Assembly: GCA_946965045.2 (NCBI GenBank)
Contig: OX337232.1
Location: forward strand, 3,596,001-3,660,000
Reading direction: 5' to 3'
Length of the DNA: 64,000 bases
Origin: Epithemia pelagica
Taxonomy: Eukaryota; Protista; Bacillariophyta
A program made the position numbers and the translations under genes. Positions 25,737 to 50,328 of this stretch are shown piece by piece. The notes under the pieces were generated by a model. That model had not been told where the DNA came from, searched no databases, and saw only the letters and a list, made by a program, of their open reading frames with translations. Positions within the stretch are counted from its first letter, which is position 1. Every line of letters begins with the position of its first letter.

Positions 25737-28289
25737 TCATCGTTGCAGGTTGTGTCGCAGTGTGGTCGGTACCACGACCACCGGTTTTTCGTACAGGGAG
25801 GGTGCCGTCGTGGTGGTCGGTACCGAGACTCGATTTGGATGCTGAAAGAATGGACGAGTCTCTGCAAGTGTTGTCGTCGTTGGGATTGGTCGATACGACA
25901 CCAGCGGCTCCCCTCCACCACCATAAAGATGATTGGGGACCGAAGGGGTAGTCGCTGAAGGAGTCAAATACTGTACCGTTCGGCCGGTCCATACAAAGTG
26001 TGGATGAGTCAAGTCCAGCCGTTGTGTAGAAAGAATAATGGAAAGGGCAGTGGCTGGAACAATGGCCCAAATTCTCTCATCCGATTTGAATGACTGAGAA
26101 TCGAGAGGCCGTGTGGCGGTACTACTAGGACCCGCTGCTGCTGCTGTTGTTGGTCCGAGAGTGGGTTTTTCGAGACACACATGCGTCGTAGAGGTTTCAT
26201 CCATTTCACCACGACGAGGAGGCACAGCCGTAGATGGTGCGTGTGGCATGACATTCATGGGAGACGGTCCACCATCCACTCCTCGACTCGTCTTCGTGTT
26301 GTAATTGTTCTTCTTCTTCAAGTGTACTCCAGGGCCCGTCGCATAGGCATTCTTGTACTGAGCTCGGCGATACTCGGCCGCATTGGCCAATTGCCGAAGG
26401 TATCGTTGATGTCGTACAATGGCTTCGCGCATGGCATGGCCCGCCTTTTCTCGGGCATTCAAAGGAGTGAGTTCACCCCACCGTCCCGACTTGTCGTCCA
26501 TGGCCTTGATGAATCGTCCATAGACGGGTCGATTGGTATCCCTGTCACCGTCGTTTTCATGATCAGGGTCCAAGCCGGTTCCGTATCGAACGACATGGCA
26601 AATGTCGGCCAAGACAATGGTCTTTTCCAACTTGGTGGGGGCGTCGACGTAGCGTTGCCGGAAGCTGTCGACAATGTCGTAGAATCGAACATTGCCATAG
26701 CGTGAGATATTGCCTCGTCCCCGTCCACAAAAAACATCGTATTGAATGGCAACTTTGTAGTCCTTGGGCAAGGGCGTCAATTCCGGTGCTTGCTGTGGTG
26801 CTCGTTCGGGTTTGGATGGAGGAGATGGTTCGGTCGACCGCTTTGAAGAAGCAGCAGCAGCAGCAGCATCATGGCGAGAAGAGTCCATGGCCGGAGTAGG
26901 AGAAGTGGCAGAATCGAGAGGCCGTGTGGCGGTACTACTAGGACCCGCTGCTGCTGTTGTTGTTGGTCCGAGGGTGGGTTTTTCGAGACACACATGCGTC
27001 GTAGAGGTTTCATCCATTTCACCACGAGGAGGAGGCACAGCTGTAGATGGTGCGTGTGGCATGACATTCATGGGAGACGGTCCACCAACCCCTGGTGACA
27101 TGCGCCGCATGGTTCGACTCTGGACGGGTAGTGTCTTGTCCCCGGCAGCATGTCCACGGTGCATCTTGGACGATTTTGGTTTCGTTTCCGGCATCTTGCA
27201 CGACGACTTGTGGCGTTTCTTTTTTTGCTGGTGTGACGGGTGGATTGTATCCTCCTGATCCGTGGGGTGTCTCGTTTCCTGCATCTTGGACGACGACTTG
27301 TGGCTTTTCTTTTTCGGGTGAAACGTGCTGCATCCTTCGAGATTGTTCGTGTGGTCCTCCCTAGTGTCGTTGGCAGCAGTAGCAGCAGCAGTATCAAGTT
27401 GTCGTCGTGTCTCGTCGGATCCATCCAATCGTTGCATCTGATGGGAAGACTTGTGGTGGTGCCTTGTTTGATCGATTTTGGACGACGTGTGGTGTTTCTT
27501 CTTCTGTTGCGGTAATGTGTGGATTGTGTCCTGGCGAGAGTTGGCATGGTTCGTCTCGTCATGGACAGCAGCAGCCGTGTTGTATGGTGGTGTCTCCTCC
27601 TCCTGGTGGTGGTTGGTGGAGTCGGATTCATAGTCCACTCCTCGACTCCTCTTGTTGTTGTACTGGTTCTTCTTCTTCAAGTGTACTCCGGGGCCCGTCG
27701 CATAGGCATTCTTGTACTGAGCTCGGCGATACTCGGCCGCATTGGCCAATTGCCGAAGGTATCGTTGATGTCGTACAATGGCTTCGCGCATGGCATGGCC
27801 CGCCTTTTCTCGGGCATTCAAAGGAGTGAGTTCACCCCACCGTCCCGACTTGTCGTCCATGGCCTTGATGAATCGTCCGTAGACGGGTCGATTGGTATCC
27901 TTGTCACCGTCGTTGTCGTCGTCAGGAGCGTCCAAGCTGGTTCCGTATCGAACGACATGGCAAATGTCGGCCAAGACAATGGTCTTTTCCAACTTGGTGG
28001 GGGCGTCGACGTAGCGTTGCCGGAAGCTGTCGACAATGTCGTAGAATCGAACATTGCCATAGCGTGAGATATTGCCTCGTCCCCGTCCACAAAAAACATC
28101 GTATTGAATGGCAACTTTGTAGTCCTTGGGCAAGGGCGTCAATTCCGGTGCTTGCTGTGGTGCTCGTTCGGGTTTGGATGGAGGAGATGGTTCGGTCGAC
28201 TGCTTTGAAGAAGAAGCAGCAGCAGCAGCAGCAGCAGCATGGCGAGAAGAGTCCATGGCCGGAGTAGGAGAAGTGGCAGTACGATGCAT
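25737..28289 (-). CDS. Diatom DUF6824 protein with two near-identical DUF6824 domains
   Basis: DVFCGRG...GN.RF..IV...R.RY...EK......IC.VVR..GRFIK...W.EL....AREKAGHAMRE occurs twice. Start chosen by homology with the paralog at 51527. Confidence 0.82.
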   Translation of the reverse strand: MHRTATSPTPAMDSSRHAAAAAAAASSSKQSTEPSPPSKPERAPQQAPELTPLPKDYKVAIQYDVFCGRGRGNISRYGNVRFYDIVDSFRQRYVDAPTKLEKTIVLADICHVVRYGTSLDAPDDDNDGDKDTNRPVYGRFIKAMDDKSGRWGELTPLNAREKAGHAMREAIVRHQRYLRQLANAAEYRRAQYKNAYATGPGVHLKKKNQYNNKRSRGVDYESDSTNHHQEEETPPYNTAAAVHDETNHANSRQDTIHTLPQQKKKHHTSSKIDQTRHHHKSSHQMQRLDGSDETRRQLDTAAATAANDTREDHTNNLEGCSTFHPKKKSHKSSSKMQETRHPTDQEDTIHPSHQQKKKRHKSSCKMPETKPKSSKMHRGHAAGDKTLPVQSRTMRRMSPGVGGPSPMNVMPHAPSTAVPPPRGEMDETSTTHVCLEKPTLGPTTTAAAGPSSTATRPLDSATSPTPAMDSSRHDAAAAAASSKRSTEPSPPSKPERAPQQAPELTPLPKDYKVAIQYDVFCGRGRGNISRYGNVRFYDIVDSFRQRYVDAPTKLEKTIVLADICHVVRYGTGLDPDHENDGDRDTNRPVYGRFIKAMDDKSGRWGELTPLNAREKAGHAMREAIVRHQRYLRQLANAAEYRRAQYKNAYATGPGVHLKKKNNYNTKTSRGVDGGPSPMNVMPHAPSTAVPPRRGEMDETSTTHVCLEKPTLGPTTAAAAGPSSTATRPLDSQSFKSDERIWAIVPATALSIILSTQRLDLTHPHFVWTGRTVQYLTPSATTPSVPNHLYGGGGEPLVSYRPIPTTTTLAETRPFFQHPNRVSVPTTTTAPSLYEKPVVVVPTTLRHNLQR

Positions 28290-28552
28290 GGTTGGCGATG
28301 GTTGCTTTATTGCCTTGTTGGACGAGGGGCGTTTTGTGTTGTCTAATTGTAAAAAGGAACGCCTGGGAGACAACGGACGGTTGCCAATCTCGGTGTGTGT
28401 GCCTCGGTGTGTGTGTCTCGGTGTGTGTGCACAAGAAGAATCAAACGAAAAGCCTGTTTGGATGGACCTTTTTCTCACCGACAAACTACGCATGCGGTTT
28501 GGGTCGCTTGGTTATTTTATTTGTTGGAAGGGCGCGTCCTCTTGTTAAGTCG

Positions 28553-29084: not shown

Positions 29085-29297
29085 CGCATCGTACCGCCCC
29101 GGTCAAGAAGGGACCGACGGACGAACGATGAAGAGGACATCGATCCCAGTGAGATCTCAAGAGCAAGAAGTGGTTGGGATGGTCATTCCTATGACCGTCC
29201 CAACAAAAGTTCAGCAATCATAAATTGTTGGAAAGAAGAAGAGCACAGTCATCAAGGATTTGATCACCCATTGGTTCTGTGTATTCGCTTCTTTCGC
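29085..29297 (+). repeat. Split direct repeat A1 (213 bp)
   Basis: Matches 37470-37682 and 38112-38324 end to end. Confidence 0.95.
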
Positions 29298-29360
29298 TTC
29301 GGTTTTGGTGTTTTCTCCCTGTCGACCGTGCCATCCACCTCATCCTTGTTCTTGTTCGCC

Positions 29361-31717
29361 ATGAAGTTTGAGTGGGGAAGTACTCCGGATTCTTCACCCT
29401 CAGTGGGGTCGTCAGGTGAGTCTCTTGTGACCGGGGGGGGGGGGGGGGGACCCTTCGTTCGGGTTCTCTCTTCGGTGTTGTTCGTTTCGAACAATCTAGT
29501 TTTGAGTCGTTATGTCGGGGCATTTTTGGCACTGGGCAGCGTGTGTGTGTTCGCTCCGACTGTTCGGTTGCGTCCCATACGGCTCGGAAACAAGAATGGG
29601 CTTCTTTGGTGGGGGACGATGCCACCTGCATTTTTATTCGGGGCGGTAGTGTGTCCACGAATTCCGATACCGCGGATACGGTTTTCAGTCATCCCATTCT
29701 TCCGGGAGCTTGTGTCCGTGATTTGGATTGGAGTGAGATGGAACTGAGTCCGCGATCCCTCGAGAGTTGGCAGGCCACGTTCGCCTCTTTACGTCAAGTC
29801 GCATCCGAGGAAGGTGAGGGTGTGGATCTCACAATTGCTGCCAAAGTCATGGCAAATACGAAAGGTGAAGTCAAGTTTGCTGCCATGACACCTAAACCTA
29901 GCAAGCGTGCTAAGGTCGAAACAGTGTCTAGTAGTGATAGTGAGGATGAAATGGAACTCCTGGAAGGAGGCCATCCTCGTACTCCGGCAGGTCGTTCATC
30001 GATTCCATGGAAAGAGGTCCCTTTGGACATTGGCTCACAGCAAGCGACACCGTCGGTCAAGGTCTTGCAAGGTGGAGCGTGGAGCAATTTGGTAGAGAAT
30101 GTTAACCATCTCAAAGCCGATTGTCAACGCGCGTCCCACAAGAGAAAGGTAATGGAGGAAATGCAAGAAGAAGCGATTGAACAGCTGAACGTTAAGCTGT
30201 CGGTGTTGCATGCGTTGTTGGGGGTACGGCCTGCGGAATTTGGTACAGATTCGGCGTTTTCGGTCCTCAAGCACTGTGTTGAAACAGTACAAACAGTACG
30301 AGAATTGTTGAATCAGAAGCAGAGCCACCAGAGGATGGACGCTTCACTGGTGGCTAAGGTTGAGGAGCTGGATCGCAAGATGGATGTTGTTCAGGGTTCC
30401 TCGAAGTCGATGGTTCAAGGGGAGCTTGACAAATTCTTTGCTGACCAGAGCGAATTTCGTCAACAGTTTGTGAATCCTACGTTGACTCTTTTGTCTCGGT
30501 CGTCGAGTAACAATGCTGACCCAGGAGGAAAATGGGCCCAGATGTTTGAGAATCTCCAAGCACGAATGGATGCAATGGAGCGAGGTGGCGCTTCGGCCTC
30601 AACCGCGCCGTCGGGTGGATTGTCGACTGGTGGGGTTGGAAGTTTTGGATGGATGTCGGGAGGAGGTTCAGTTGGAGCGGCTGCAAGTGCGCCAACGGGA
30701 GCCACCGGGATGCTGACAGGATCTACCGGCTCGGCACTCGCAGATGCTATGGCCGAGCTGCGCCGTATGAAGGAAGAGTTGCAGGAAGTCAAAATGGGAA
30801 TTAGTGATCTGCAGGAGCAAGTAGACAATGAGGCGATTACGGTGGGATCCATCGTGTTTCCATCTCGTACTTTCTGTGTGTCTTGGCTTACCTTGCACCA
30901 CGCAGAAAGCGATCCGCATGTTTTCGTTGACGCTGTCTCGTTGTTGTCGTTGGCGACGTCGGATATGAGTTTGGACGAAGATCGAGCGGCCAACAAACGC
31001 GCAACAACAGCAAAGGTGAGAGATAAGACCCCTTATCACACGGCGTATATTGCGTCATTCAATCTAGACGTACCTTCTTTGCTGGGTAAAGGGACAGATC
31101 AGAGTCAGACCACGAACTCGCGAGCTCTGGGAGGCGTTCCGAAGTTTGAAGACTTTCACCCTCCGTCAAGGCGCGAGGGAATCCATCAGCGGATCCTTGA
31201 TCATGTACGGGATGGGAGGCAGACTCTTGAGCAAGCAATTGGTGAATTGTTTGCCTTTGGAACAGCGCCGTCGAGTGTGGCCAAGGAAATGTTGCATTTG
31301 AGTAAGGCCTTTTGGGATGACCTTTGTCACTGGATGGTACGATACCATCAACAGGTCCAGGCCGAGAGTGAAGCCAGCGAGCAGGAGGTTTGGATCCTCA
31401 TCTCGCATTGCGTGCGGGCGGTGTTTAAGAGCCTTAGAGAGGCTCGTGCTCCGGGCAGAGCATCAAATACCCCAGCTGGCATGTTGTGGGGGACCTTGAA
31501 AGCTCATGACGTGATGAAGGAGTACAGAGCTGCCGAATTCAGCGGCCATCCCAAGATAGCACTCATTTTGCACGAACACTTGATTCGGTTCGCGACCCCA
31601 CGTTCGAAATTCGATACACTTAAGTCAAGTCTGGAAGAACGGTTGGAAAAGCTGCAACGGTCAGTAAATGCGGCGGTGTCGGCAACTAACAAGGCGAGCA
31701 AGAAAGAAAAGTCGTGA
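29361..31717 (+). CDS. Gag-like ORF1 of element 1; one-base frameshift in the G17 run at 29433-29449
   Basis: With one extra G, ATG 29361 reads into LFGVVRF...LCRGIFGTGQRVCVRSDCSVASH, which matches element 2 FGITF...LCLGIKRGGNTFCIDPKCSKAGDH. The C-terminal LWGTLKAHDVMKEY matches LYGVLRTHDVMAEY. Coiled-coil-like middle. Confidence 0.75.
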
Positions 31718-31720
31718 GAA

Positions 31721-34700
31721 GTGAGTCCGTGGGAGGTTGTGGCAATATCTCAGAGGAAAGATAGGAAACGTGGACGGGAGGTTGGCGAGAAAATGAATGT
31801 GGAGAGCCGAGAGTTAGCGAAGGGCTCGTTGTTGAAACGTAAAGTAGATATGATCGACGCAAGTGACGAGTCGCTAACTGGAGTTGCGGAACAGAAGACT
31901 GGGCGGATGAGAGTAGGGAAAGGAAAGTGGCGAATAGGCATAGCAAGTATTGGAACCCCCTTTTGGTTTTGGGCGGTGACATCGCTTGGCTGTGTAAAGT
32001 GGATTGATGTGTTGGATGTAGATGACATTGGCGACGAAACTGGAGCTTCTGAATGGCGAGAGCTGTTGATCCCGTTAGAGCAGAAACTGACGAAGAACCG
32101 AGGTTCGAAAAAACAGCGAATTGAATTCCAGGAGTCGCAGGAGTGGAATAGACGCTCGCTAGTTGATGTTGTCTTCTTTGAAGGGGGTATGTCACCGGGT
32201 CCATCTCACCCAGTTTGGAGCATGGAGACCGTCCAAGTAGTGGTGTGGATAGGCGGTCAAAAATGGTCGGGTCCTCCTTTAGAGGATCTTCGGCTAGAGA
32301 AATGGTCAAAAGGGGTGATGAAGATTCCACATCAGGATCTTGGAGGTGTCACCGATTTGGTTTCTTGGATCCATTTTGCAGAGCGTACTCAAGGACCATC
32401 GAAGGAACAGTGCAAGGACATGCCAAGGTTCGTTGATTGTTGGGCCGATTTCCTCGATGATGGTTTAAGGAAGACAACTATGCGGGGAGTGATCGATCCC
32501 ACGGTCCACGGTAGAGAATGTAAATTATCTGTGGAGTGTGTACGAGGAGCACGTCCTTCATCGATGATTGTGAACCGCAAGCTGAGATGGAAGATTGACA
32601 GGTTCATAGAGCATACGTTGCCAAGTGTATTTGCATCAACAGGTCTCGTAAAGCGGCGGCTTACTCCGAAGGAAATCGCGATTACAATGGACTTTCCGGC
32701 TGGTCTCCATAAACGAGGATCGGATTCGGAATTGGCTCGTTGGTTGGATGATGTGTCGGTTCCCTTCAAGGTTAGAGTGCAAGTTGTTAATTCGTTGCGT
32801 GAATGGACGAGAGAATCGAAGGAAGGGTTCACAGAAGATGTGAAAATCAGGAAAGATGAGGGTTGTCTGGATCGAAACGGTTTACTCAAGGAAGAGGATG
32901 AGTGCCCCGATGAAACACGAATGACGGAAGACGAGATACCTTTGTATTCGATTCCCGACAGTGAGGAAGGGGGTGGCTCTCTCAACACCGAGGAAAGGCG
33001 TGAGGACAGAAACCTGAAAGCAACAAAATCAGACGATGCAAAAATCCCGACTTACCTTTGGGACAATCGTATCTGTCAAAAATTGGGAATCCAGAATGAA
33101 GGTAAACGGTTGGAAGTGGTCGACGCGCTGAATTCGATTCGCAAGGGGGCGCTACGATATTGGAAGCGTCGTGTCTGCGCGGATTTCTGGTCGTGGTGGA
33201 AGAATCAAAAGTTTGACGATGACGAGGAAGAAGTGCGAGATCAAACCATCAAAGCCGGACTCAGCGCTTTGGAGCATGCAGCGAGGTCATCCTGGTGGGA
33301 TTGGGACATGGGTTCTTCCCCTTTCTTCTGGAGGATGCCAGATTTGGGGTGGATGACGGAAATGAGAGACGGAGTCGCCCCCATGTGGATTGGACCGACA
33401 CCTGCATATCGGCGGCGTCAACATGCCAACCCGAATGAGGAGAGTAAAGCTTTGGAAAAGAAGAAGTTGACCAAAGTGAGGAAGCGGGGGTACATCGCGC
33501 CAACTCCAGGCATCAAATCACTTACCAGTTTCTTCTCAGTCCCGAAAGGGGAGGATGATATACGTATGGTTTATGACGGGACGAAGAGCGGTCTCAATGC
33601 GGCGCTCTTCTCTCCGTGGTTTGGTCTGGGAAATGTGAACGCTATGCTCCGTTCGATGGAAGGAAAAACATGGTCAGCAGATAATGATTTTGGTGAGATG
33701 TTCCTTAACTTTTGGGTTCATCCCGAGCTCAGATGTTATACGGGCATTGACATCACTGACCTGTTTCCGGAGGAATTGAAAGAACGTTGCGGACGCACAA
33801 GAATCTGGGAAGCATGGACGAGATGTGCGATGGGCCTCACAACTTCGCCCTACCAAACGACCCAGTGTGCCCAACGTGTAAAAAGGATAATTTTCGGAGA
33901 CCGGTCTGATCCTGAAAACATATTTGGCTGGGTTGACGTGAGGTTGAATTTGCCGGGGGATACAGACTATGACCCATCGCTGCCATGGATCAGTAAGATA
34001 AATGCGAATGGAGACATCGCGGCGGATGTCCACCCATACGTTGATGACTTACGTGAGACAGCTCCCTCGGAAGAGGAAGCCTGGCTGGCGGCGAGCAAAA
34101 TGGCAAAGGGAGCGGCGTTCTTTGGGTTACAGGATGCCGCAAGGAAACGAAGAGAGCCGAGCAAATCGCCGGGTGCTTGGGCTGGAGCCATTGTTGAAAC
34201 TGGTAATGATGGACGAGTATACAAGACTGTGGCTCAGGATCGCTGGAACAAGACAAAGGCTCACGTCGAAAGGTTGAGTGAATGGGCGGAATCGCCAGAA
34301 CGGATCAATCGAAAGGAACTCGAGCGCATACGAGGATTCCTTGTGTACGTGTCGCTTACTTACGACATTATGGTCCCCTATCTCAAGGGAATCCATTTGA
34401 CTTTGGAGTCATGGAGACAGGACCAAGATGGAGAGGGTTGGCGATTGCCTGAAAAAGATCGCAGAAAGCGAGCTTGTGAATGGAAGGAAAAGGCGAGTGA
34501 GATTCCGCCAGATACTGTCGCAAAGGTCCCGAGGTATGATGGGGATATCGCCGCCCTTATGGAACTTACGAAGGATAAAACACCGCCAAGAATCTTAGCG
34601 AGACCTCTCAAAGGCTCCAAGGCTGCCATTTTATTTGGGGACGCCTCCGGAGAGGGATTCGGCTCGTCGTTATGGATCTATGGATCAAGCACCGTAGAAA

Positions 34701-35569
34701 CAGAACATGGGCTTTGGACAAGGGCATACGGAGCCAGGTCATCGAATTTCCGCGAGTTGTACAACCTGGTTCTGCGCCTCGAGGCCTTGGTGGACAATGG
34801 AACCATTGAGCATGGTTCCGAAGTCTTTATGTTCACAGACAACTCGACGGCGGAGGCTGCCTTTTACAGGGGAACTTCGTCGACCAAGTTGTTGTATGAG
34901 CTAGTGTTGAGAACCAAAAGAATGGAGATGCGAGGTTGCATTTTTCTCCGTGTCGTCTGGGTGGCAGGCACACGGATGATTGAGCAGGGCACGGATGGGC
35001 TCTCGAGAGGTGACTTAATGACAGGAGTCATGGCCGGGAGTGATATGTTGTTGTATGTGCCCCTCAATAAGACCGTTGAAGAACGGCAGAGTGGGGTTGT
35101 GGATTGGATCACAAACAAAGCCACAACGCTCTCATTCTGGAAGACTCTCTCTGCGCAAGATTGGTTCGATCAAGCGTTTGAACAAGGAAATTTCGTGTGG
35201 ATTCCGCCTCCTGCTATTGCAGATGTTGCGGTGGATCAATTGTGCGAGGCGAGACACGTGCGCACACACTCTGCCCATGTTTTTATTTGCCCTGCGCTCA
35301 TGTCGAATCGTTGGAGGAAGAAGTTGGGAAAGGTCGCCGACTTTGTGCTTTATATCCCAGTTGGCTGTGAACTTTGGTCAAAGTCTCAACACGAACCGTT
35401 GATTGTTGCCTTTTTGTGCCCTTTTTTAAGCAGGAAACCTTGGCAGGTCAAGCGAGCAAAAGGCTTACTGGACACGGTGGACGGGGAACTGTCTGAGTTG
35501 TGGCCATCCGGTACAGCCGTTGTCGGGAATCTGTTGCGCAAATTATGGACATACACGGGGCACGAGTAG
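31721..35569 (+). CDS. Pol ORF2 of element 1: C5-methyltransferase-like N-terminal domain, reverse transcriptase, RNase H
   Basis: RT: FFSVPKG.DDIRMVYDGT, DNDFGEMFLNF, MGLTTSP, YVDD. RNase H: GDASG.GFG, SSNFREL, FTDNSTAE, QGTDGLSRG. Confidence 0.93.
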   Translation: MSPWEVVAISQRKDRKRGREVGEKMNVESRELAKGSLLKRKVDMIDASDESLTGVAEQKTGRMRVGKGKWRIGIASIGTPFWFWAVTSLGCVKWIDVLDVDDIGDETGASEWRELLIPLEQKLTKNRGSKKQRIEFQESQEWNRRSLVDVVFFEGGMSPGPSHPVWSMETVQVVVWIGGQKWSGPPLEDLRLEKWSKGVMKIPHQDLGGVTDLVSWIHFAERTQGPSKEQCKDMPRFVDCWADFLDDGLRKTTMRGVIDPTVHGRECKLSVECVRGARPSSMIVNRKLRWKIDRFIEHTLPSVFASTGLVKRRLTPKEIAITMDFPAGLHKRGSDSELARWLDDVSVPFKVRVQVVNSLREWTRESKEGFTEDVKIRKDEGCLDRNGLLKEEDECPDETRMTEDEIPLYSIPDSEEGGGSLNTEERREDRNLKATKSDDAKIPTYLWDNRICQKLGIQNEGKRLEVVDALNSIRKGALRYWKRRVCADFWSWWKNQKFDDDEEEVRDQTIKAGLSALEHAARSSWWDWDMGSSPFFWRMPDLGWMTEMRDGVAPMWIGPTPAYRRRQHANPNEESKALEKKKLTKVRKRGYIAPTPGIKSLTSFFSVPKGEDDIRMVYDGTKSGLNAALFSPWFGLGNVNAMLRSMEGKTWSADNDFGEMFLNFWVHPELRCYTGIDITDLFPEELKERCGRTRIWEAWTRCAMGLTTSPYQTTQCAQRVKRIIFGDRSDPENIFGWVDVRLNLPGDTDYDPSLPWISKINANGDIAADVHPYVDDLRETAPSEEEAWLAASKMAKGAAFFGLQDAARKRREPSKSPGAWAGAIVETGNDGRVYKTVAQDRWNKTKAHVERLSEWAESPERINRKELERIRGFLVYVSLTYDIMVPYLKGIHLTLESWRQDQDGEGWRLPEKDRRKRACEWKEKASEIPPDTVAKVPRYDGDIAALMELTKDKTPPRILARPLKGSKAAILFGDASGEGFGSSLWIYGSSTVETEHGLWTRAYGARSSNFRELYNLVLRLEALVDNGTIEHGSEVFMFTDNSTAEAAFYRGTSSTKLLYELVLRTKRMEMRGCIFLRVVWVAGTRMIEQGTDGLSRGDLMTGVMAGSDMLLYVPLNKTVEERQSGVVDWITNKATTLSFWKTLSAQDWFDQAFEQGNFVWIPPPAIADVAVDQLCEARHVRTHSAHVFICPALMSNRWRKKLGKVADFVLYIPVGCELWSKSQHEPLIVAFLCPFLSRKPWQVKRAKGLLDTVDGELSELWPSGTAVVGNLLRKLWTYTGHE

Positions 35570-36977
35570 AATGTGTAAAAGCATTTGGCATGCAAGTTGT
35601 TACGCCAAATTGGAACATGATACCTTCCCGGTGTTTGAAGCCGCAGATTTGGATGATGCTCTGTTGGACGAAGAGTTGCATGGGGAGATGGAAGATGACT
35701 CCAGGCGATTTCAGGAGGCGAGAGTCGGGGACGACCTGATGTGTCCTTTCCAATGCGACGAATGCTCCTTTTACAACTTGCAAGGGCGATTCGCTGCGGA
35801 TCGAGAGCAAGACAAGATTTTGAAGTTGTGTATTCGACGGGCGAACTTGGATGCGTTTTGGTCGCAAGAAAGGAGCACGGTAGAGAAAAACTGGAGAGAG
35901 ATGAAAGGGCTGCTGGAAATCGGGAACACGATAGGTTTGGATCACCCTCTTCCGAATAGAGGTCCAATGCCGCTCGGAGACACGCAAGGATTGAATGTGG
36001 CGTGCCTTATGCTGATGAAAACTTTACGAGAAGGACGGAACTCAAAACGGATTCAATTTGAGACGGCCAGGAAGGTTCGGTCTGTGGTGTCAAATTTCTG
36101 CCACACGTTGCCAGGAGGAAGTGGATTGTCGGCCGTGGGCCAAGGGGACAGAGGTGGATTGTTTTTTAGCGCCAGTTCAACAAACTCCTACTGGTTCCGA
36201 CGATTCATGGCAGGCTGCCATCGTCGCATGGGAGATGTTTGGATTCCGGATCAGGCCGTAACTTTGGATGAGATCTTGGCTGGGCTGGCAATCCTTGAAG
36301 AAGAATGGCAAGGTGGTGTCACGGGTCAGAGAAAGCGGGAGGTGGCGTTGACAGGTGCCTTGGTTGTGGTTGGATTCGCAGCCGCCCTGCGAGGAGAAGA
36401 GATCCCACAAATTGATGTGGGACTGATGAGGAAATACTGGGAAGAAGGACTCAATTACCAACGAAAAAGACACGTACCGTTGGCTCTTGCTGGACGTTTC
36501 AAACAGACGAGCGGAACCTTTCGGATTTACATCCAACCGCTGTGCGATCGAACAAGTTCGGGCATTGAAATAAGAGTCTGGTTGGAAAGAGCAATACGGA
36601 GTCTCGAAGAGGTCAAGATAAGGACGGGCCCGATGTTTCGGATGTCTACAAAACAAGGCAAGATCAAGCGTGCGTCCGTGGGAGATCTCGACATACTGTT
36701 TCACGCCCTTTGGAAAAGGGTACAGCACCGACACCCGCACTTGATAGTCGAGAGCACAAAGGTCGAGGAAGTGTTTAGTACTCGGCGTTCATTCAGAAGA
36801 GGAGCTACGACGGAAGCGCAGAACCGGGGCATTTCGAAAGATACGATCGAAATGAATAACCGATGGAAAAAACACCTGAAAGGAAGAGGGATACTTCCTT
36901 CTATGTCAATGATCGAGCGATACTCGGATGCCAAGGCCTCAGTCGAGGCGTTGGTTAAGTTTTCTGAAGGCTTGTAA
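35434..36977 (+). CDS. Tyrosine recombinase ORF3 of element 1 with an N-terminal Cys-rich finger; start probably supplied by splicing
   Basis: ALRGEE (catalytic R), RSFRRGATT, NRW, ERY (nucleophile Y). The frame is open from 35430 with no ATG before the conserved CxxC. Confidence 0.88.
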
Positions 36978-37051
36978 GAAAATCAGGGAGAAGGAGGAAA
37001 GGAAGAGGATTATGAATGAGAAATACGAAGGTTGAAGGAAAGACCAAACGG

Positions 37052-38755
37052 GGTGATGACTCGGCTATACTACTACCTCGGTGGTATACGTCTAGGTCGC
37101 TTGTTGTCCGTCAGCTGGCCTGTTTCATGGACTGGAAGTCTCTCTCCACGGTTGGTTGCTTGAGTGTGGCAACTCATTGCAGCTGACTTCTGCATCGCTG
37201 CGAAGATATTTCGAGGATGCGGTCTCACTTTGTGAGGAAAAGGAGTGGGGGTTCTGGTCTGGAGACACACTCGCCCACGGCAAACACAGTTTAGCAGATT
37301 CTGGAGATCTGCGACTGTGGCGCGATTACGGATCCTTCCTACGGATATGGGTGGGGGGCCATAACCCCCCCCCCAGCGTTGGTCAAGTACTTTAATATAG
37401 TTTTTCTAAGTGTGTAAGAATGTGAGAACGAGAAGGGTCGGTGTCCTCAGAAGAGAGAGGAACTAGTACCGCATCGTACCGCCCCGGTCAAGAAGGGACC
37501 GACGGACGAACGATGAAGAGGACATCGATCCCAGTGAGATCTCAAGAGCAAGAAGTGGTTGGGATGGTCATTCCTATGACCGTCCCAACAAAAGTTCAGC
37601 AATCATAAATTGTTGGAAAGAAGAAGAGCACAGTCATCAAGGATTTGATCACCCATTGGTTCTGTGTATTCGCTTCTTTCGCCCACCCGCCCGCCCGGTG
37701 ATGACTCGGCTATACTACTACCTCGGTGTTATACGTCTAGGTCGCTTGTTGTCCGTCAGCTGGCCTGTTTCATGGACTGGAAGTCTCTCTCCACGGTTGG
37801 TTGCTTGAGTGTGGCAACTCATTGCAGCTGACTTCTGCATCGCTGCGAAGATATTTCGAGGATGCGGTCTCACTTTGTGAGGAAAAGGAGTGGGGGTTCT
37901 GGTCTGGAGACACACTCGCCCACGGCAAACACAGTTTAGCAGATTCTGGAGATCTGCGACTGTGGCGCGATTACGGATCCTTCCTACGGATATGGGTGGG
38001 GGGCCATAACCCCCCCAGCGTTGGTCAAGTACTTTAATATAGTTTTTCTAAGTGTGTAAGAATGTGAGAACGAGAAGGGTCGGTGTCCTCAGAAGAGAGA
38101 GGAACTAGTACCGCATCGTACCGCCCCGGTCAAGAAGGGACCGACGGACGAACGATGAAGAGGACATCGATCCCAGTGAGATCTCAAGAGCAAGAAGTGG
38201 TTGGGATGGTCATTCCTATGACCGTCCCAACAAAAGTTCAGCAATCATAAATTGTTGGAAAGAAGAAGAGCACAGTCATCAAGGATTTGATCACCCATTG
38301 GTTCTGTGTATTCGCTTCTTTCGCCCACCCGCCCGCCCGGTGATGACTCGGCTATACTACTACCTCGGTGGTATACGTCTAGGTCGCTTGTTGTCCGTCA
38401 GCTGGCCTGTTTCATGGACTGGAAGTCTCTCTCCACGGTTGGTTGCTTGAGTGTGGCAACTCATTGCAGCTGACTTCTGCATCGCTGCGAAGATATTTCG
38501 AGGATGCGGTCTCACTTTGTGAGGAAAAGGAGTGGGGGTTCTGGTCTGGAGACACACTCGCCCACGGCAAACACAGTTTAGCAGATTCTGGAGATCTGCG
38601 ACTGTGGCGCGATTACGGATCCTTCCTACGGATATGGGTGGGGGGCCATAACCCCCCCCCAGCGTTGGTCAAGTACTTTAATATAGTTTTTCTAAGTGTG
38701 TAAGAATGTGAGAACGAGAAGGGTCGGTGTCCTCAGAAGAGAGAGGAACTAGTAC
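37052..38755 (+). repeat. 3' repeat array B1(37052-37469)-A2(37470-37682)-B2(37697-38111)-A3(38112-38324)-B3(38339-38755)
   Basis: Direct comparison. B copies differ in C-run length (10/7/9) and by one G>T in B2. A 14-bp spacer CCACCCGCCCGCCC lies between A and B. Confidence 0.95.
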
Positions 38756-38862
38756 CTCACGTGGCAATCATACACAAAAATTTATAGTCAAAACATAGGC
38801 CCCCTTCCTTTTGTGGAGACGACGACCATGGCAGTCGATACAACGTCGAAAATGATGCCTTA

Positions 38863-40898: not shown

Positions 40899-43352
40899 AT
40901 GTCTTTCGCTCCGTCTAAAGCTCCTCCTCCCGACGATGAGGACTCTCTCCTTTCGTCTCTCGTTGCTTCGGCATCCATTGTCACTCCGGGCATGGCCGGG
41001 GCCCCAGCTCGTGCTGGGGCTCAGGGGGGGGGGGGGGATAGTGGTCAAATTTCCTTCCTTCCTTCTGATTCCACGGACCTTTCGACAGCTACTCCCATGA
41101 AGACGACTGTTACGGAACCCTCAGGCACGGGCGATTTCTTGTCTACAAGTAAGTTTGGAATTACCTTCCTCTCCGACGAAACTGCCCAGGAAAAGCTCCT
41201 TTGTTTGGGAATCAAGCGAGGGGGGAACACCTTTTGCATAGACCCCAAGTGCTCCAAAGCCGGGGACCATGGAACAGGTTTACCCCCCTTCGACTTGTCT
41301 CAAACCAGCGGAGGATTCATTATGAAGAAGACCTCGGCATCCGCCTTCTGCTCGCCAGGCATCCCTCTTGATTCTATTCCGTCCGAAATCAAGAACAAGC
41401 TCCTCCAAGAAAAGCATACGGTGGATGACTGGATGAAGAAGTCCCTAGCTATCAAACGCTTCGCGTTGATCAAAAAGGAACAAGGAGAAACAGCTGAGAA
41501 CCTTGAAGAGTCGGAAGCTCGTGTCATCAAGATCACGGACTCTTCGACACCGTACACTGTTTCGAAACGTTTCGCAACTTCAAATCCGTCTTTTGTAGTT
41601 GAAAACTTCTCTCCTCATCGAAAAATCCTCGGCGGAAATCTGCAAGAGGTGACAACCAAGATTTGAGAAGACCCAAGCATGATCCCAATGGTATTGCGGG
41701 AGATCGAGGATTCTATGATGGAAGCTGGAGAGTTGATCCGTGCTATCTCCTCTGACCAGGTAAAGGCAAAACAAGAAGTCGTTGATAATGTTGAAGCCTT
41801 GGGGTTGCAACTGGAAAAACTACACATGGAAATCGGACCGAGGGAAAACATTAATGAGGTTTTTCAAGCCCCAACAATTCTTTGGGGTGTCCTTCAAGCC
41901 ATTACCAACTCAATTACGGGGAGTGACTCAACTTCGGGGGGAGTCAACCAAGACTCACTCCGATCCATGGAATTGTTTGTCAAGTCCAAGATCGGTGATC
42001 TAGACATTCAAATCAACAACATGTCGACTCATTTCAAGACGCTTCATTTGCAAACAAGAAACGATTTGCAGACCGTGTCCACGGATGCTAAGGCCATGGT
42101 GGATTCTCTTCGTTCTCACTTGGTCAAAGGCTTCCAAGGCCTCATCAGTCGAATGTCTACAGTGGAGCAGTCGGTGCAGATAATTCAACAGAACGGGATA
42201 AACAATCCAAGCAACTCGATGTCGAGCGGCACTTTGGGAAATTTGACCCCGCAACAACAAATCGATTGGTTGGCTAAAACCAGCAAGCTGGAGGCAGAAA
42301 TCCAAGGACTAAAAGCTGTCCTCCAACAGGGACAAGCGGATTTTCAACGTTTGAAGTCTAAGATGGATACAACAGCAATCAAGTTTGGAAACTTGGGTTT
42401 GTCGACAGTGGACGACTGCAAAGCATGGGTCGCTATGAAGTTTGGCTCCAGGGCATATGGATTGTTCTTCGACTTGCCTTTGGTTTTGGAATGGTGTGCC
42501 TCCCAGGAGCATGGCGACGTTTTGTCCATGCTTACGGCAATGGAAAAAAGGCACAAGATGCAAATCGCTACTACAAATGAAGCGAGATCTCTTTATGCTA
42601 TGAAGCTTGAGTTTCCACAGATTCTTTACAAAGATCTGCCTGGAACCGGCCGAGACCCGTCTTTCTTAACAGCTATGAAAGACTATGAAGATTGGGAGGC
42701 TCCAGAAACAGGAGTCCGAGATAGAATCATCAACAAGATCGGCAATATGCAATCCATGTTTGGAGAACAGATCGCAATCACAATGTCGGGAGAACCGGAA
42801 GCCCATGCCTTGGCTACCTCGATGCTGTCGGTCTCAATTGGATGTTGTCGTGAGCTTGTGAATTATTTTGACGAAACAATGAACGAGCTTACGATGAAAT
42901 CGAAGTTCACCACACGCAAGGCTTTTAGCCTGGTAACGCAAGTGGTTCGACGCTTCTTCTTGGACCTCTACAAGGTGAGGGCTCAAGTCTATTCGTCGAT
43001 TTCAACCTCGGATCAAAGTGGTCAATGTGCGTGGATCCTCTATGGGGTGCTTCGAACCCACGACGTCATGGCAGAATATTCTACCGCGCGTTTCTAGAAT
43101 CACCCGTCCGTTTCCAGTGAATATATTCGGTTCCTGTCGACGAACTCAGGATTTGAATCCCTAAAAACACTGGAGGACAAGGTGGACTCTCTCAAACAAA
43201 ACATGCAAACGGCCACCAAAGAATGTCATGCGGCGAAGAAAGCAGCTGATACTGCTAATAGCACTGTGGACTCAGTCAAAAAGGACGTGGCTGAGTTGAA
43301 GAAAGCAAACAAACGCCGTGGCGGAAACAACAGCAACAACAACAGCGATTGA
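40899..43352 (+). pseudogene. Gag-like ORF1 of element 2 with in-frame stops at 41664-66 (TGA) and 43095-97 (TAG)
   Basis: The frame continues through both stops (F*NHPSVSSEYIRFL aligns with FSGHPKIALILHEHL of element 1) to TGA 43350-52. Confidence 0.82.
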
Positions 43353-43376
43353 CAAGAAGGAGCATCTAAATTAGGA

Positions 43377-46300
43377 ATGGATAGTTCACCATCTGTCTCT
43401 GCCGATTTAGATGCTCTTAGTGAAGCCTCCACTATTAGTTCTGGCCGTCTTCTACAATGTGGAGAGAAACCGCGAGCACGGTCGCATCCCTCTTGTGAGG
43501 TTACAATTCAACGATCCGTTCGACGAATGGTGGACCGCGGAGTGAAAACTTTTCGTGCTGACGTCTCTTGTCTTCTCTTGGGACAAAGTTCCTGGTATTG
43601 GGGCTTGGCGTTGAACCAAGGGGATTGGAGTGGGATCTACATGCTGGCCAGCGATTATGAGGCCAGACGCACCAACCCCTTTTGGCATTCGGTTGCCAAA
43701 CAGTTAGAACCAAAATTGCACCTTGTGCCCAGCATCAACTTCATCCTGGGCCGAGGCTTGATTTCCTTGGTATTGATTGAAGGAGATCCAACGTATTTGG
43801 GGTCTACCTTACCTCATATACCGTCCGATTGGCCTGTCCTGATGCTTCTTCCTGCGGGTTGGTCACGTCCGTCCATCCCTGACGTGCACTGGCTCGCCGT
43901 GAGTCACACACGTTGTGGCGGTGTCACTACGGCCAGAGTCAATATTGGCCGTCGCAATCTCCCTCCTTTGCACTTTCAGGTGGAGGTTCGGCGGTCTATT
44001 TCCTCGATTCTCGATCACTCAGTTCGGCCGACCTCTTGCTCAGCTGTCGGGCCATCTCAACCATGTTACCCGCAACACAGTCAACTTTACGTCCGCAATT
44101 TGAAGCGTCATGTTTTGGTGCCCACGACGTTCTACAAGACTGGGTGGGGCCACCGTCCCCTTACCCCCGCCGAGTTAGGATCCGCTTTTGATCTCCCCTT
44201 GTGGCTGCCTCCTACCTCGGACGCCCATGCTTGGTGGCACAACCATGTGATGGGGGCGCGTTTTGTCCCTATCAAGATCCCTGCTGCTGTGTTGGGCGGT
44301 GCCATCCCTCATTTGGAACCGGACTATGTACATCATCTGGATCGAGCCGGGGAAAAGCGTGACGGGCCTCCTCCTCATTGTCCTCCGACGCCCAAACGTC
44401 GGCGAGTTTCGCCACCCATGGATGCTACAACGCGTGATGGTCAACCGGGCACGTGGTTTGCTCCCATTCGTGCTTTCCTGCCCCACTCAGCTTGGCTGGA
44501 CGACTCTCTCATTGCAACCAAAGCTACTCAGGCGGACGATGCGGAAGCCCCCTATGCTTTGTGGGATGGTCGCATTCGTGGCGTGTTTCCTTGGGTTACT
44601 GATCGGGCCTTAGCTGGGTTTCGCACTCTTGGCCTTTGGTGGTGGCGACGTTCTTTGTACCGTGGTTCGGGATGAATTGGCTGTCGCTTCTACCAGCGGC
44701 GCGCCAGCGCCAGGGGGGGGGTGGGGTGGGGTGGGGGGGGTGATGTTTTCTCTTTGCTTGAGGTCTGCATAGCTGGGCGTTCGGTTCTTTCTCAATTGCT
44801 TGCGGCCTCCTGGTGGGATTGGGACCACGGCTCCTCCCTGATCTTTTGGCGGTGGAACGGCCAACAACAACAACGCGATGATTGGTACGGTACTCCAATC
44901 CACGTCACTGCTCCTCTTCCACGCAACAAACGTCCCCAACGTGCTCCTACGGCGGACTCCCGACCACGTGTTGCCGCCAAACTCGCCAAGGTTCTATCAC
45001 GTGGCTATTTTGACACCGATGCATCCATCCTTAGTTTAACCGACTACTTCGATGTCCCCAAGGGTGACACCGACATCCGGATGGTTTATAATGGAACCAG
45101 CTCCGGCCTCAACGATTCCTTGTGGGCTCCAAATTTCTGGCTTCCGACGGCGGAAACTTCATTGCGCCTTTTAACAACCGCTTCGTACTGTGGAGACATG
45201 GACCTAGGGGAAATGTTTCTCAACTTCCCCATGGACCACAATCTGCGTCCTTTTGCCGGTGTGGATCTACGCCCCATCAAAGACTTGTTCCCTTCGGAGC
45301 TTTTGGAGGCGGGATGTGCAGACAAAGTCCGCTGGAACCGCCTGTTTATGGGCATGCTCCCAAGCCCTTTTCACGCGGTGGAACAGTTTTACTTGGCTGA
45401 GGAAGTCGCTAGAGGCTCCCCTCATGACTTGCTCAACCCCTGCGGATTCGATGAGGTTCGGTTTAACATTCCGGGCTCGGCCGATTATTCTCCAGTACGG
45501 CCTTGGGTGATGAAGTGGAACTCCCAAACTAACTCCATCGCCGGTGATTCGGTTACATACATGGACGACATTCGAATTGTCGGGTCGTCGGCAGAAAACG
45601 CATGGCAGGTGGGTAGACAACTGGCTTCACGCCTCCAATATTTCGGCATTCAGGACGCGCCGAGGAAACGTCGTCCGCCCTCCAAGACCCCGGGAGCATG
45701 GGCTGGGTCGGTCCAGCATATTTCAGACACTGCTGTGTCCAAGACGGTCACACAAGCGAAGTGGGAAAAAGGGAAAGGAATCATTCGACTGTACAAAGAG
45801 GCTTTCAAGAACAGTGATTCCCCGTCCTTTTTGCACAAGCAAATGCAACGCGACGTCGGGTTCCTGGTGCATCTAGCAATGACTTGTGCTTGCATGATGC
45901 CTTTCCTTAAGGGTTTCTACCTGTCCATGAACTTGTGGCGAGGAGGACGCAACAAGGAAGGATGGAAACTTTCAGCAAGGGAATGGATTACAGAACCGCA
46001 GGAAAAACTCGACACTCGAGAATACGACACGCTCTGCGGCTTTGGGAATGACGTAGAGAAATCATTCGACCAACGCGAAAAGGAAGACCTTCAACCTTCA
46101 CCTCAAATATCCGGTGTCCCAAGACTCAAGGCAGATGTTGAGGCACTGTCAGCTCTTTTTGACTGTGACACTCCCCCAATCATCAAGGTCCGATGCGAAA
46201 CCATCTTTATTGCCTTATACGGATCTGGCGACGCGTCTGGAGCCGGATTCGGATCCGCCATCCAGCTGCCGCAAAAGGGATTGTCTTACCGAATTAGCGT

Positions 46301-47256
46301 CTGGGATAGTGACGTTGTGGTGGGAGAGTCTTTCAAACTGGAGAGAGTTTACCAATTGTGTGGAGGCTCTGGAGGAGGAAGCGAGGAAAGGGACTTTGAA
46401 ATCCTCGGAAGTATTTTTCTTCACCGACAACTCAACGGTGGAACGGTGCTTTTACAAGGGGTCCTCCTCCAGCCCCAAACTCCTAGACCTGGTGATCCGC
46501 CTAAGACGACTAGAAATGGCACACTCGTTGCGGTTACTTATTTCACATGTGTCAGGTAAAAGAATGATTGCGTGGGGTGTGGATGGTATTTCCAGAGGTC
46601 AGATGAACAAAGGCGTCATGGCGGGTCAACCGATGCTGGCGTTCATCCCACTGCACAAAACACCAATTCAAATGTCAGACTCCCTTATGGGATGGGTAAA
46701 GTCATGGCTGGGGCCAAAGACGGAATGGCTTACCCCCATGGACTGGTTTACAACCGCCCACGACATCAGAGGCTGGACAATGCCTACTGAAGCAAACAAA
46801 CTGTCCCTGCCAATACTGAGGCCAGGACACTTTGTTTGGAGTCCTCCTGCGGGCGCAGCAGATGCCGCCCTGGAAGAACTCAGGAAGATTAGACACAAGA
46901 GACAAAAGTCTACTCATGTCTTTCTATGTCATCGTCTGCTTACTCCCCGCTGGTACAGACTGATGCACAAAGCTTGTGATCTCGTAATTACCATTCCGGC
47001 TGGAACGTCGTTTTGGCCTCGTGACAACTATGAACCTCTCATCGTCGGTTTTGCCTTCCCTTTTCTTAGGTCAAAGCCGTGGCAACTGCGCGGCACGCCA
47101 AAAATGTTCGCAGTGGAGAGGAAGTTGCGAGAAATGTGGAAAAACGATGAACTGGGTGGACGGGATCTTTTGCGGAAACTTTGCATTCAGTGTTGGAAAC
47201 TGGCCACCATGTCGGAAAGCATGGTGTCCAGGGTGTTATTTTTCGAGCGAAGATGA
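43377..47256 (+). pseudogene. Pol ORF2 of element 2 (MTase-like, RT, RNase H) with a stop at 44673-75 and a +1 T insertion at 46331-33
   Basis: DYFDVPKGDTDIRMVYNGT, DMDLGEMFLNF, YMDD, GDASGAGFG. Removing one T restores GESSNWREF, then FFTDNST and GVDGISRG. Confidence 0.9.
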
Positions 47257-48643
47257 CGGTTTCTACATTGCTAGCAAAAATACATCCTACGGGCAAGATG
47301 ATCAAGATCGGCTAGTTTCAGAAAGTTGGAAGCAGCAATCTCGGGACAGATCCGAAGACTTTTTGAAAGCAAGAAAGGGTGACCATTTGATCACCCCGTT
47401 TGAGTGTGATTTTTGCATCTTTCGCAAGCTGCGATTGCGAGACCCGGATCGTACAAACGTGCAAGACAACTATCTCATGATTTGCATCAGACGAATGAAT
47501 CTCGATGCCTTTTGGAGTAAAGCTCCCAGCACAGTAAAACAAAATGCAACCTTGGTGAAGCGTATGATTGAAAGCTCGGCGAAAGTAGGGAATCCGCATG
47601 GGCCGTTTGAAAGAGCAAGCCCTTTCCCTCCGCACGACCATTGTGGATACCACATAGCATTTCTCATGCTTGATGACTCGAGGAACCAAGGAAAATATCA
47701 CAAGACTCATAAGCAATTTGATTCGGTGAGAAGAATCCGGTCGGCATTCTCAAACTTTGTTCGGGCAACTCCTTCCACCTTGATGGGGCCGGCGTCTATG
47801 GTATTGGTGGACAACAATGGCAAAACCGCGAGCAGAATTGGAAACGACGAAAGTGGCTCTCTCTGGTTCTCAAGATTTGCAGAAGGTCTTAAAAGAAGAA
47901 TGGGTCAAGACTGGCGACCGGACCAGGCAATCACCCCGGATTTGCTACTAGCGGTACTCTCCTCGGTAGAACAAACGGTCGTGGACTCGGAGTCGCTAGA
48001 GTGGCAATACACGCAAATCATGGCGGGTACCTTTTTTGTGATAGCTTACGTATTGTCGCTAAGAGGGCCCGAAGGTTTTCTTCTGGACTTGGAAGGTCTC
48101 CGTCTACATGGAGACTCTCTTCGGCATCGGGCTAGCTGCGTGGTTATAGCATTGTGGGGTCAATTCAAGGGCGAAAACGCTGAAAGAGCGCACTTGCTTC
48201 CTTGTTGCGATATTACAGGAAGTGGCATTCCAGTTCGGACTTGGGTCCGACGAGCGGTTCTTTTGGCTCTGGATAACAACAAAACCAAGGGACCACTGAT
48301 GACTCATAGAGATGGAAAAAAGATATCATCTCGGGATATTGATGAAATATTCCACTTCCATTTGACGCAGGTGTGGAATCAAAGCCCCCATCTGTTTCTC
48401 TCTCACGAGATCAGTGACGAGGAAGACATTGTGAACAAGTACTCGAATTCTCGATCCTTCAGGAGAGAATCAAATACCCGGGCAAAAGAAATGAACGTAT
48501 TGATTCCTGACACAGACATCATTAACAGATGGCGCGTTAAAGAATCAGCAGGAACAAGAAAAGAAGGCGGGTCCATGGATCAAACCTACACCGATCCGAC
48601 CCTGTTGTTGGCGCCTTTCCTTCGATACACCCAACAGATGTGA
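47070..48643 (+). CDS. Intact tyrosine recombinase ORF3 of element 2 with an N-terminal Cys-rich finger
   Basis: SLRGPE, RSFRR, NRW, TY motifs; colinear with element 1 ORF3; no stops. Confidence 0.88.
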
Positions 48644-49975: not shown

Positions 49976-50328
49976 CTTTTCGTACGAGGGCGGCGTGACC
50001 TGTACCGAAACGTACTGGTGGGGACGATGGAATGGAGGAGGCGTCATCGTCGTCGTATCCGCCAGTGCTGTTGGTGGCGGTCGGTGGTACGCCGAATGCA
50101 AGGGCTCACCACCACCCTGAGGAATGGGGGCCCACAGTAGTACTTGTCGATTTTTCGTACGAGGGCGGCGTGACCTGTACCGAAACGAACTGGTGGGGAC
50201 GATGGAATGGAGGAGGCGTCATCGTCGTCGTATCCGCCAGTGCTGTTGGTGGTGGTCGGTGGTACGCCGCATGCAAGGGCTCACCACCACCCTGAGGAAT
50301 GGGGGCCAAAGTAGTAGTACTTGTCGAT
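49976..50328. repeat. 175-bp tandem duplication of the 3' end of the DUF6824 gene
   Basis: ttttcgtacgagggcggcgtgacctgtaccgaaacg... occurs at 49977 and 50152. Confidence 0.93.

Follow-up and report, generated by a model that had tools for sequence, protein, structure and literature searches.

How is the recombinase of a retrotransposon made when its open reading frame (ORF) overlaps the end of pol in a different frame and no start codon precedes its conserved N-terminal motif? Expression of the recombinase is poorly understood in DIRS, Ngaro and PAT elements, where its ORF is often overlapping and without a start codon. We met this question in a 64,000-nucleotide (nt) stretch of the diatom Epithemia pelagica (assembly GCA_946965045.2, contig OX337232.1, positions 3,596,001 to 3,660,000, forward strand), referred to below as the window. 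It carries two retroelements on its plus strand, element 1 (29085-38759) and element 2 (coding region 40899-48643), each with gag, pol and a tyrosine recombinase (YR) frame. All coordinates are window positions, and the stretch under study is 29361-36977. A sequence-only reading had proposed that in both elements a splice of about 6 kb places the recombinase under the gag start codon, as in the mRNA for retroviral env. We examined this model one exon at a time. The results showed signals, conserved across the family, that make it probable that a donor in gag is spliced to an acceptor at the end of pol and that the recombinase is thereby expressed from the gag start codon.

A consensus donor within gag

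Relatives were collected by one protein search and one metagenome scan, which gave 80 loci with a pol-YR junction, and genomic copies were added by look-ups, among them L002, L003 and L099 from ENA assembly ERZ21939226, which probably come from the same genome as the window. The YR proteins of the relatives were from 81% down to about 30% identical to that of element 1, and recombinase homologues were named in Epithemia clementina, Fragilaria crotonensis and Pseudo-nitzschia multiseries. Donor sites were scored as the number of matches out of 9 to MAG|GTRAGT, taking the best donor-like site within 600 nt after the gag ATG in 17 full-length elements from about 10 lineages.

The gag ATG of element 1 at 29361 is followed by the 5' splice site CAG|GTGAGT (29413-29421, plus strand), which scored 9/9, stands in phase 1 and has 29415 as its last exon base. 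The coding part of the predicted exon 1 (29361-29415, plus strand) comprises the gag ATG with 18 codons plus 1 nt and is conserved, with synonymous changes, in L002 and L003. In element 2, whose gag ATG is at 40899, the donor CAA|GTAAGT (41146-41154, plus strand, 8/9) follows 83 codons plus 1 nt, again in phase 1, with 41148 as the last exon base. The donor positions and phases proposed from sequence alone were therefore present in both elements.

The best donor-like site was in phase 1 in all 17 full-length elements, 55 to 250 nt past the gag ATG, with a score of at least 8/9 in 15 of them and a perfect score in six. The codon split by the donor was GGT in 16 of the 16 cases encoding Gly, compared with 28% GGT usage in gag. 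At the two third codon positions within the signal, +5 was G in 17/17 elements (background 0.29) and -2 was A in 14/17 (background 0.23). The residue following the donor Gly varied (Glu, Lys, Thr or Gly), and Gag around the donor was of low complexity and could not be aligned between lineages. Outside the focal donor, sites scoring at least 8/9 numbered about 12 in 62 kb of element sequence; judged against these background sites, the placement of the donor appears to be more than chance. Many lineages carry a G-run after the donor, which may act as an intronic enhancer or encode a Gly linker.

The Gag protein sequence is conserved before and after the donor, and in L003 it runs unbroken across it; the unspliced RNA therefore encodes Gag. 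With the donor read through as part of the gag ORF, the full-length transcript would serve as the gag(-pol) mRNA.

An acceptor at the pol-YR overlap

The predicted 3' splice region of element 1 (35384-35433, plus strand) overlaps pol codons and consists of a branch-like CTCAAC, a 45-nt AG-free pyrimidine-rich stretch and a tandem AAG/CAG. Its two possible ends, AAG at 35430 and CAG at 35433, are both in phase 1 for the YR frame (window coordinate mod 3 = 0), as had been claimed; CAG 35433 is the position common to L002 and a 90% relative (P0123). Element 2 has a pyrimidine tract and a TAG acceptor (47040-47069, plus strand), also in phase 1, where the pol frame reads CTT AGG T. The acceptors of both elements lie 57 nt ahead of the first Cys codon of the CxxC motif, in agreement with the homologous position assigned to them earlier. 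The branch-like CTCAAC named earlier is thus present; the yTnAy pattern follows automatically from the pol Leu-Ile/Thr codons. Since pol (31721-35569) reads through the acceptor, the tract and its AG also code for Pro-Phe-Leu-Ser/Arg.

Acceptor statistics were taken from about 60 pol-recombinase junction loci. Across these loci, the YR frame is closed by a stop within the Glu-Pro-Leu motif of pol and reopens 20-30 codons before W..G.CxxC. Third positions of pol were 0.75 pyrimidine over the last 10 codons, against a background of 0.48 further upstream, and the AG-free stretch before the acceptor had a median length of 48 nt, whereas the background gap is 8 nt. In the YR frame the acceptor AG reads xxA|Gxx, with variable residues. 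Read in pol, it forms an AGN codon in every case (AGG 27, AGA 14, AGT 12 and AGC 7, never CGN or TCN in 60 loci), compared with 37% AGR for Arg and 24% AGY for Ser elsewhere, in a count whose site was picked as the phase-1 AG. A phase-blind rule, which takes the AG ending the longest AG-free stretch, selected the phase-1 site in 42 of the 56 distinct loci. In a freshwater subfamily, the AG stands two codons after the invariant Pro-Trp of pol rather than before it, once more in phase 1.

We found no conserved donor in pol within 600 nt upstream of the acceptor, so the partner of the acceptor must be distant. The gag donor and the acceptor were kept together in about 10 lineages at 30-50% protein identity. 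Site and phase are conserved in other copies, the donor in phase 1 in 17/17 and the acceptor across the junctions, and this family-wide conservation at the nucleotide level, where neither reading frame demands it, supports the proposed env-like splice of YR.

The same overlap also suggests the main rival, a +1 ribosomal frameshift at the end of pol, with a pause at the AGN codon, that would yield a (Gag-)Pol-recombinase fusion; we consider this unlikely, though the strongest of the alternatives. In 71 of 73 loci YR lies +1 to pol, which it overlaps; an ATG is lacking from this part of the YR frame in most elements, and the pol codon at the entry point is conserved as AGG, AGA, AGT or AGC. The Ty1 and Ty3 shift sites have AGG and AGU as their slow codons, and the diatom elements resemble Ty1 and Ty3 in having a downstream enzyme ORF that lies +1, overlaps pol, has no ATG and is entered at an AGG/AGU-type codon. 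Element 2 has the CTT AGG T noted above, the Ty1 heptamer CTT AGG C itself stands in several freshwater relatives, and L099 and P0215 are natural single-ORF Pol-YR fusions. However, a shift heptamer is not conserved, since CTT AGG C in its exact form is confined to a few freshwater relatives and the codon before AGN varies (TCC, TCT, TCA, TGC, TGT, CAC, CAT, GAT, GCC, CTT, CTC and AGC). The variation of this codon means that, unlike in Ty1 and Ty3, there is no common slippery site, and different tRNAs decode the four AGN codons. A frameshift leaves the pyrimidine enrichment at pol third positions, the AG-free zone and the distant gag donor unexplained, these features having no role in shifting. 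Moreover, because pol lies behind an in-frame stop after gag in most loci, the fusion would need two recoding events there.

Structure prediction and start of the recombinase

The YR frame of element 1 (35430-36977, plus strand) follows immediately on a stop whose last base is 35429, lies +1 to pol and carries a Cys-rich N-terminal module from the CxxC motif (35493-35504). Its model, with a mean predicted local distance difference test (pLDDT) score of 80, matched Cre (1kbu_B, E 2.8e-5, template modelling score 0.60 on the target) and also lambda Int, XerD, Tn1549 Int and Flp. Because of these fold matches to Cre-type enzymes, the last ORF of element 1 is, as modelled, a tyrosine recombinase, in place of a DDE integrase, in line with the identity first given to it. 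Pfam and PDB sequence searches with the recombinase were blank, and a 90% cluster mate in F. crotonensis is named 'Phage integrase family'.

Residues 21-60 of the model, which hold the CxxC region, had pLDDT values of 82-93. Since this region is conserved and confidently folded, translation must come into the frame ahead of it. In most relatives the YR frame holds no ATG before CxxC. The first one in element 1, at 35571, lies after the motif and 2 nt past the pol stop, which bears out the earlier remark that element 1 has no ATG there; a start at this codon would cut the Cys-rich module.

A transcript of its own, or internal initiation at a downstream ATG (35571 in element 1, without the first Cys pair) or at a non-AUG codon, could also supply the recombinase, although we judge this improbable. 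Gene callers do annotate ATG-started ORFs (P0001 and many others), and the position of ATG 35571 so close behind the pol stop would suit such a start. A few relatives (P0033, P0061, P0091 and P0119) have an ATG just before CxxC, and the stand-alone relative L097/L098 has its own ATG behind a non-coding leader. Across the family, however, the position of the first ATG is not conserved, and no conserved near-cognate start codon was seen. The CxxC upstream of the first ATG is conserved and folded, so that truncated products would lose zinc ligands, and an internal start gives the gag donor no role.

Proposed expression from a spliced message

We infer from these signals that the donor and acceptor are used, and in this pairing. 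Under the splice model, a fraction of the full-length transcript would be spliced by the host spliceosome from 29415/16 to 35433 (or 35430). This would remove about 6.0 kb and leave a message of about 2 kb, whose coding part starts with the gag ATG and 18 Gag codons (83 in element 2) and continues in frame into the recombinase. The host splice signals that we read came from two introns of permease genes, each of about 100 nt, with donor G|GTACGT and acceptor YAG|G. In a host with such introns, one of about 6 kb would probably be inefficient, and this inefficiency would keep the recombinase scarce relative to Gag and Pol.

The model resembles the expression of retroviral env, where the full-length RNA is the gag-pol mRNA, the donor follows the gag ATG, the acceptor lies at the 3' end of pol and the gag start is borrowed. 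In viruses of the avian sarcoma/leukosis type, the donor lies a few codons inside gag and Env starts with the first Gag residues. The diatom elements likewise have a consensus 5' splice site that is read through as gag and a 3' splice site in compatible phase before the downstream ORF. They differ from retroviruses in that the downstream gene is a tyrosine recombinase rather than an envelope protein, the element is of the DIRS order with split direct repeats rather than a long terminal repeat (LTR) provirus, and splicing is predicted. Spliced RNAs are also made by LTR retrotransposons, as the env message of the gypsy/ZAM type and the 2-kb gag message of copia. There, as proposed here, host splicing sets the protein ratio from one primary transcript, though in a different order of elements. 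To our knowledge, none of these elements expresses an integrase or recombinase by splicing.

The sequence-only reading knew of no such splicing in Ngaro elements, and we likewise found no natural splicing of DIRS, Ngaro, PAT or VIPER elements described in papers on DIRS-1, VIPER/TATE, Cafeteria Ngaros and Ectocarpus elements (PMC7192593, PMC6681497, PMC8547959, PMC12477816). A full-text literature search on subgenomic RNA of such elements returned nothing relevant. The conserved donor and acceptor pair offers a concrete model of recombinase expression that is testable by RNA-seq. If true, it would represent a convergence with retroviral env expression, and a naturally occurring intron of great length, and probably of low efficiency, in a host where the two introns read are so short. 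The splice model would also explain why gene callers truncate recombinases at an internal Met or fuse them to pol through invented introns (P0001, P0186 and P0206), and would serve as an annotation rule for recombinases in diatom genomes. The chances are even, in our estimate, that this large, widespread diatom YR family regulates its recombinase by retrovirus-like splicing to a Gag-leader-recombinase product, an independent 'env strategy' in a retroelement of non-LTR type.

Search for spliced products

N-terminally extended products were sought in cluster members and in the best 150 of 2744 representatives. In most of the extended matches, translation simply continued through the pyrimidine tract, or the protein was an ab initio pol-YR gene model (P0200, P0274, P0229, P0186 and P0206), and among the best 150 of the 2744 only L095 and L096 were informative. 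L095 (positions 1-2059, Logan SRR15033867) has a 295-nt leader and an ATG, followed by 53 codons plus 1 nt of Gag-leader-like sequence that runs in frame into YR, with no pol. Its similarity to the product of element 1 begins at residue 2, and its similarity to L042 begins within 5 nt of the predicted CAG of L042. The join lies 8 nt ahead of C[CT]TGG, matching the acceptor expected for its clade. These features make L095 a candidate spliced RNA or retro-copy of one. Since spliced RNA would keep both terminal repeats, it may be copied back as short leader-plus-recombinase elements such as L095.

The remaining alternative, that the splice-like motifs are by-products of coding (Ser-Gly-Glu in Gag, Pro-Phe-Leu-Ser/Arg-x-Pro-Trp in Pol) or have another role, such as U1 binding without splicing, while the recombinase is expressed otherwise, seems to us just as improbable as an internal start. 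Both sites do lie within coding sequence, the branch-like yTnAy comes with the pol Leu-Ile/Thr codons, and the pol region further upstream is also AG-poor. Against this, the signal bases are kept at synonymous positions and across amino acid changes, the two sites persist together in about 10 lineages at protein identities of only 30-50%, and L095 has the architecture of the predicted junction. A short intron joining the ATG exon to gag is out because the post-donor stretch is conserved as protein and forms one ORF in L003; a short intron fusing pol to the recombinase is out because no conserved donor lies within 600 nt upstream; and a -1 frameshift at T TTT TTA (35422-35428, in the correct zero frame) is out because the shift would enter a frame that closes after about 30 codons and differs from that of the recombinase.

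Several points weigh against the splice model. Besides the choice of site in the AGN count, the acceptor signals lie within pol codons, where protein constraint accounts for part of their conservation, and the agreement in phase is inherited and is therefore not independent evidence for each lineage. An intron of about 6 kb is unusual beside the two host introns read. By homology with L003, where the corresponding ATG heads a single uninterrupted gag ORF, the recombinase would come under the gag start codon as first proposed, but in this copy of element 1 ATG 29361 is out of frame, by one frameshift, with the long gag ORF (29543-31717). For element 2, the proposed sites and phases stand, but the copy is degenerate (dead) and has a YR-frame ATG of its own at 47030, ahead of the acceptor. 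No junction RNA or protein was found for the two elements or close copies of element 1 among public contigs and proteins, and the first 40 Gag residues of an abundant relative retrieved only Gag. In all 80 metagenome loci pol lies upstream of YR; in the other YR contigs examined it lies directly upstream, except in the pol-less L027, the mini-derivative L096 and the stand-alone L097/L098. The YR of L095 is broken once, a search for the parent element of this contig found none, and the contig could be DNA or a deletion derivative. Finally, L099, with pol and YR in one ORF, indicates that a Pol-YR fusion protein is viable.

Variant copies

L096 (positions 1-1869, Logan SRR24908319) carries an element-1-like leader, the donor CTG|GTGAGT, 69 nt, a CTAG acceptor and YR. 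The frame is open throughout from leader to YR, with one break in YR. Since leader, donor, the 69 nt, acceptor and YR are all kept, L096 is an internally deleted derivative that preserves both sites. L027 (1245-4920) lacks pol and has the recombinase straight after gag; its similarity to the full-length relative L013 resumes 2 nt past the predicted acceptor of L013.

A third lineage is represented by L099 (4451-12547, ERZ21939226 ctg1351l). All three of its genes lie in a single frame, with pol running into the recombinase as one 848-codon ORF and no overlap between them, and in-frame stops occur once between gag and pol and once inside pol. L097 (415-2028) and L098 (259-1872), which come from two runs and are 99.4% identical, encode a distant stand-alone recombinase of 537 residues with its own ATG, the same Cys-rich N-terminus and a non-coding leader of at least 414 nt. 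Another relative (L085-L094) was present in 149 blocks of a public collection, mostly marine metagenomes, with a unit of about 13 kb and extra ORFs, one of 465 aa and another, on the minus strand, of 376 aa. Tandem or circular forms are suggested by the way its contigs wrap around.

Architecture and placement of the elements

Element 1 (29085-38759, plus strand) has the plan A1-[gag, pol, YR]-B1 A2 B2 A3 B3. Its 5' repeat A1 (29085-29297, plus strand, 213 nt) is 100% identical to 37470-37682 (A2) and 38112-38324 (A3). By repeat comparison, the 3' array (37052-38759, plus strand) holds 2.7 copies of a unit of about 642 nt, in the order B1 (37052-37469), A2, B2 (37697-38111), A3 and B3 (38339-38759). 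This is one A-B unit beyond the usual B1A2B2, and the units are 99-100% identical. Because A1 is identical to A2 and A3, element 1 looks like a young insertion, judged by its terminal repeats.

According to the ORF list, gag of element 1 (29361-31717, plus strand) is broken by one frameshift and ends at an in-frame stop before pol, whereas the gene in L003 is uninterrupted. Pol (31721-35569, plus strand) is intact, with 1282 codons in the gag frame, and comprises an N-terminal region, a putative reverse transcriptase (RT) with the YVDD motif, a putative RNase H and a C-terminal domain; neither pol nor YR has a break. Gag and pol lie in one frame with an in-frame stop between them (31715-31720), as in 13 of 20 related loci, which suggests read-through of the stop. 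In six of the 20, pol is in the -1 frame relative to gag, and five of these come from one subfamily (four from freshwater lakes).

The RT of element 1 fell below the RVT_1 threshold at E 0.0045 (second value E 0.0015), with the YVDD motif present, and the PDB profile match of pol to the RT of Moloney murine leukaemia virus was marginal (E 0.85). RNase H folds led the fold search with pol, whose model was of low confidence (pLDDT 52.5); no methyltransferase match was found for pol in Pfam or in the fold search made with this poor model. The lack of a methyltransferase-like domain in pol is what sets Ngaro-like elements apart from DIRS-like and PAT-like ones. After RNase H, pol ends in a conserved domain of about 200 residues with W-x-P-P-P and H-V-F-x-C-P motifs (35100-35420 and relatives). 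In L084 (3-2828), the RT (YVDD) region is joined straight to this domain and RNase H is missing, which is an internal deletion or another processing event.

The coding region of element 2 (40899-48643, plus strand) has a broken gag-pol frame; a search for terminal repeats found none. Its pol and YR are 31-39% identical to those of element 1. Its gag (40899-43097, plus strand) is broken by in-frame stops, and its pol (43377-47256, plus strand) has in-frame stops and at least one frameshift. Five in-frame stops were counted in gag-pol, one of which may be the regular gag/pol stop of the family. The recombinase ORF (47021-48643, plus strand) is uninterrupted.

The two elements are tyrosine-recombinase retrotransposons with split direct repeats, and Ngaro-like and PAT-like elements, in the classification of Poulter and Butler as cited in PMC6681497, appear to be their closest relatives. 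They share with these the gene order gag, RT/RNase H, YR, and element 1 has the repeat plan A1-[ORFs]-B1A2B2 with one extra A-B unit. The Ngaro label given in the sequence-only reading fits the repeats and the gene order, but split direct repeats are shared with PAT-like and VIPER-like elements (PMC6681497). The extra A-B unit, the C-terminal domain of pol and the Cys-rich N-terminal module of YR set the diatom elements apart from Ngaro-like and PAT-like ones, and compared with the Cafeteria Ngaros described in PMC8547959 their proteins are too divergent for the Pfam RVT_1 or Phage_integrase thresholds.

Elsewhere in the window, a 1979-codon ORF at 9424-15363 (plus strand) has a GC skew of -0.28 and an AT skew of +0.38, with no Pfam match. 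The permease genes that supplied the host introns are two tandem xanthine/uracil permease genes at 811-3522 and 5763-8504, both on the minus strand. DUF6824 proteins flank both elements, at 25737-28493 and 50106-51608, likewise on the minus strand.

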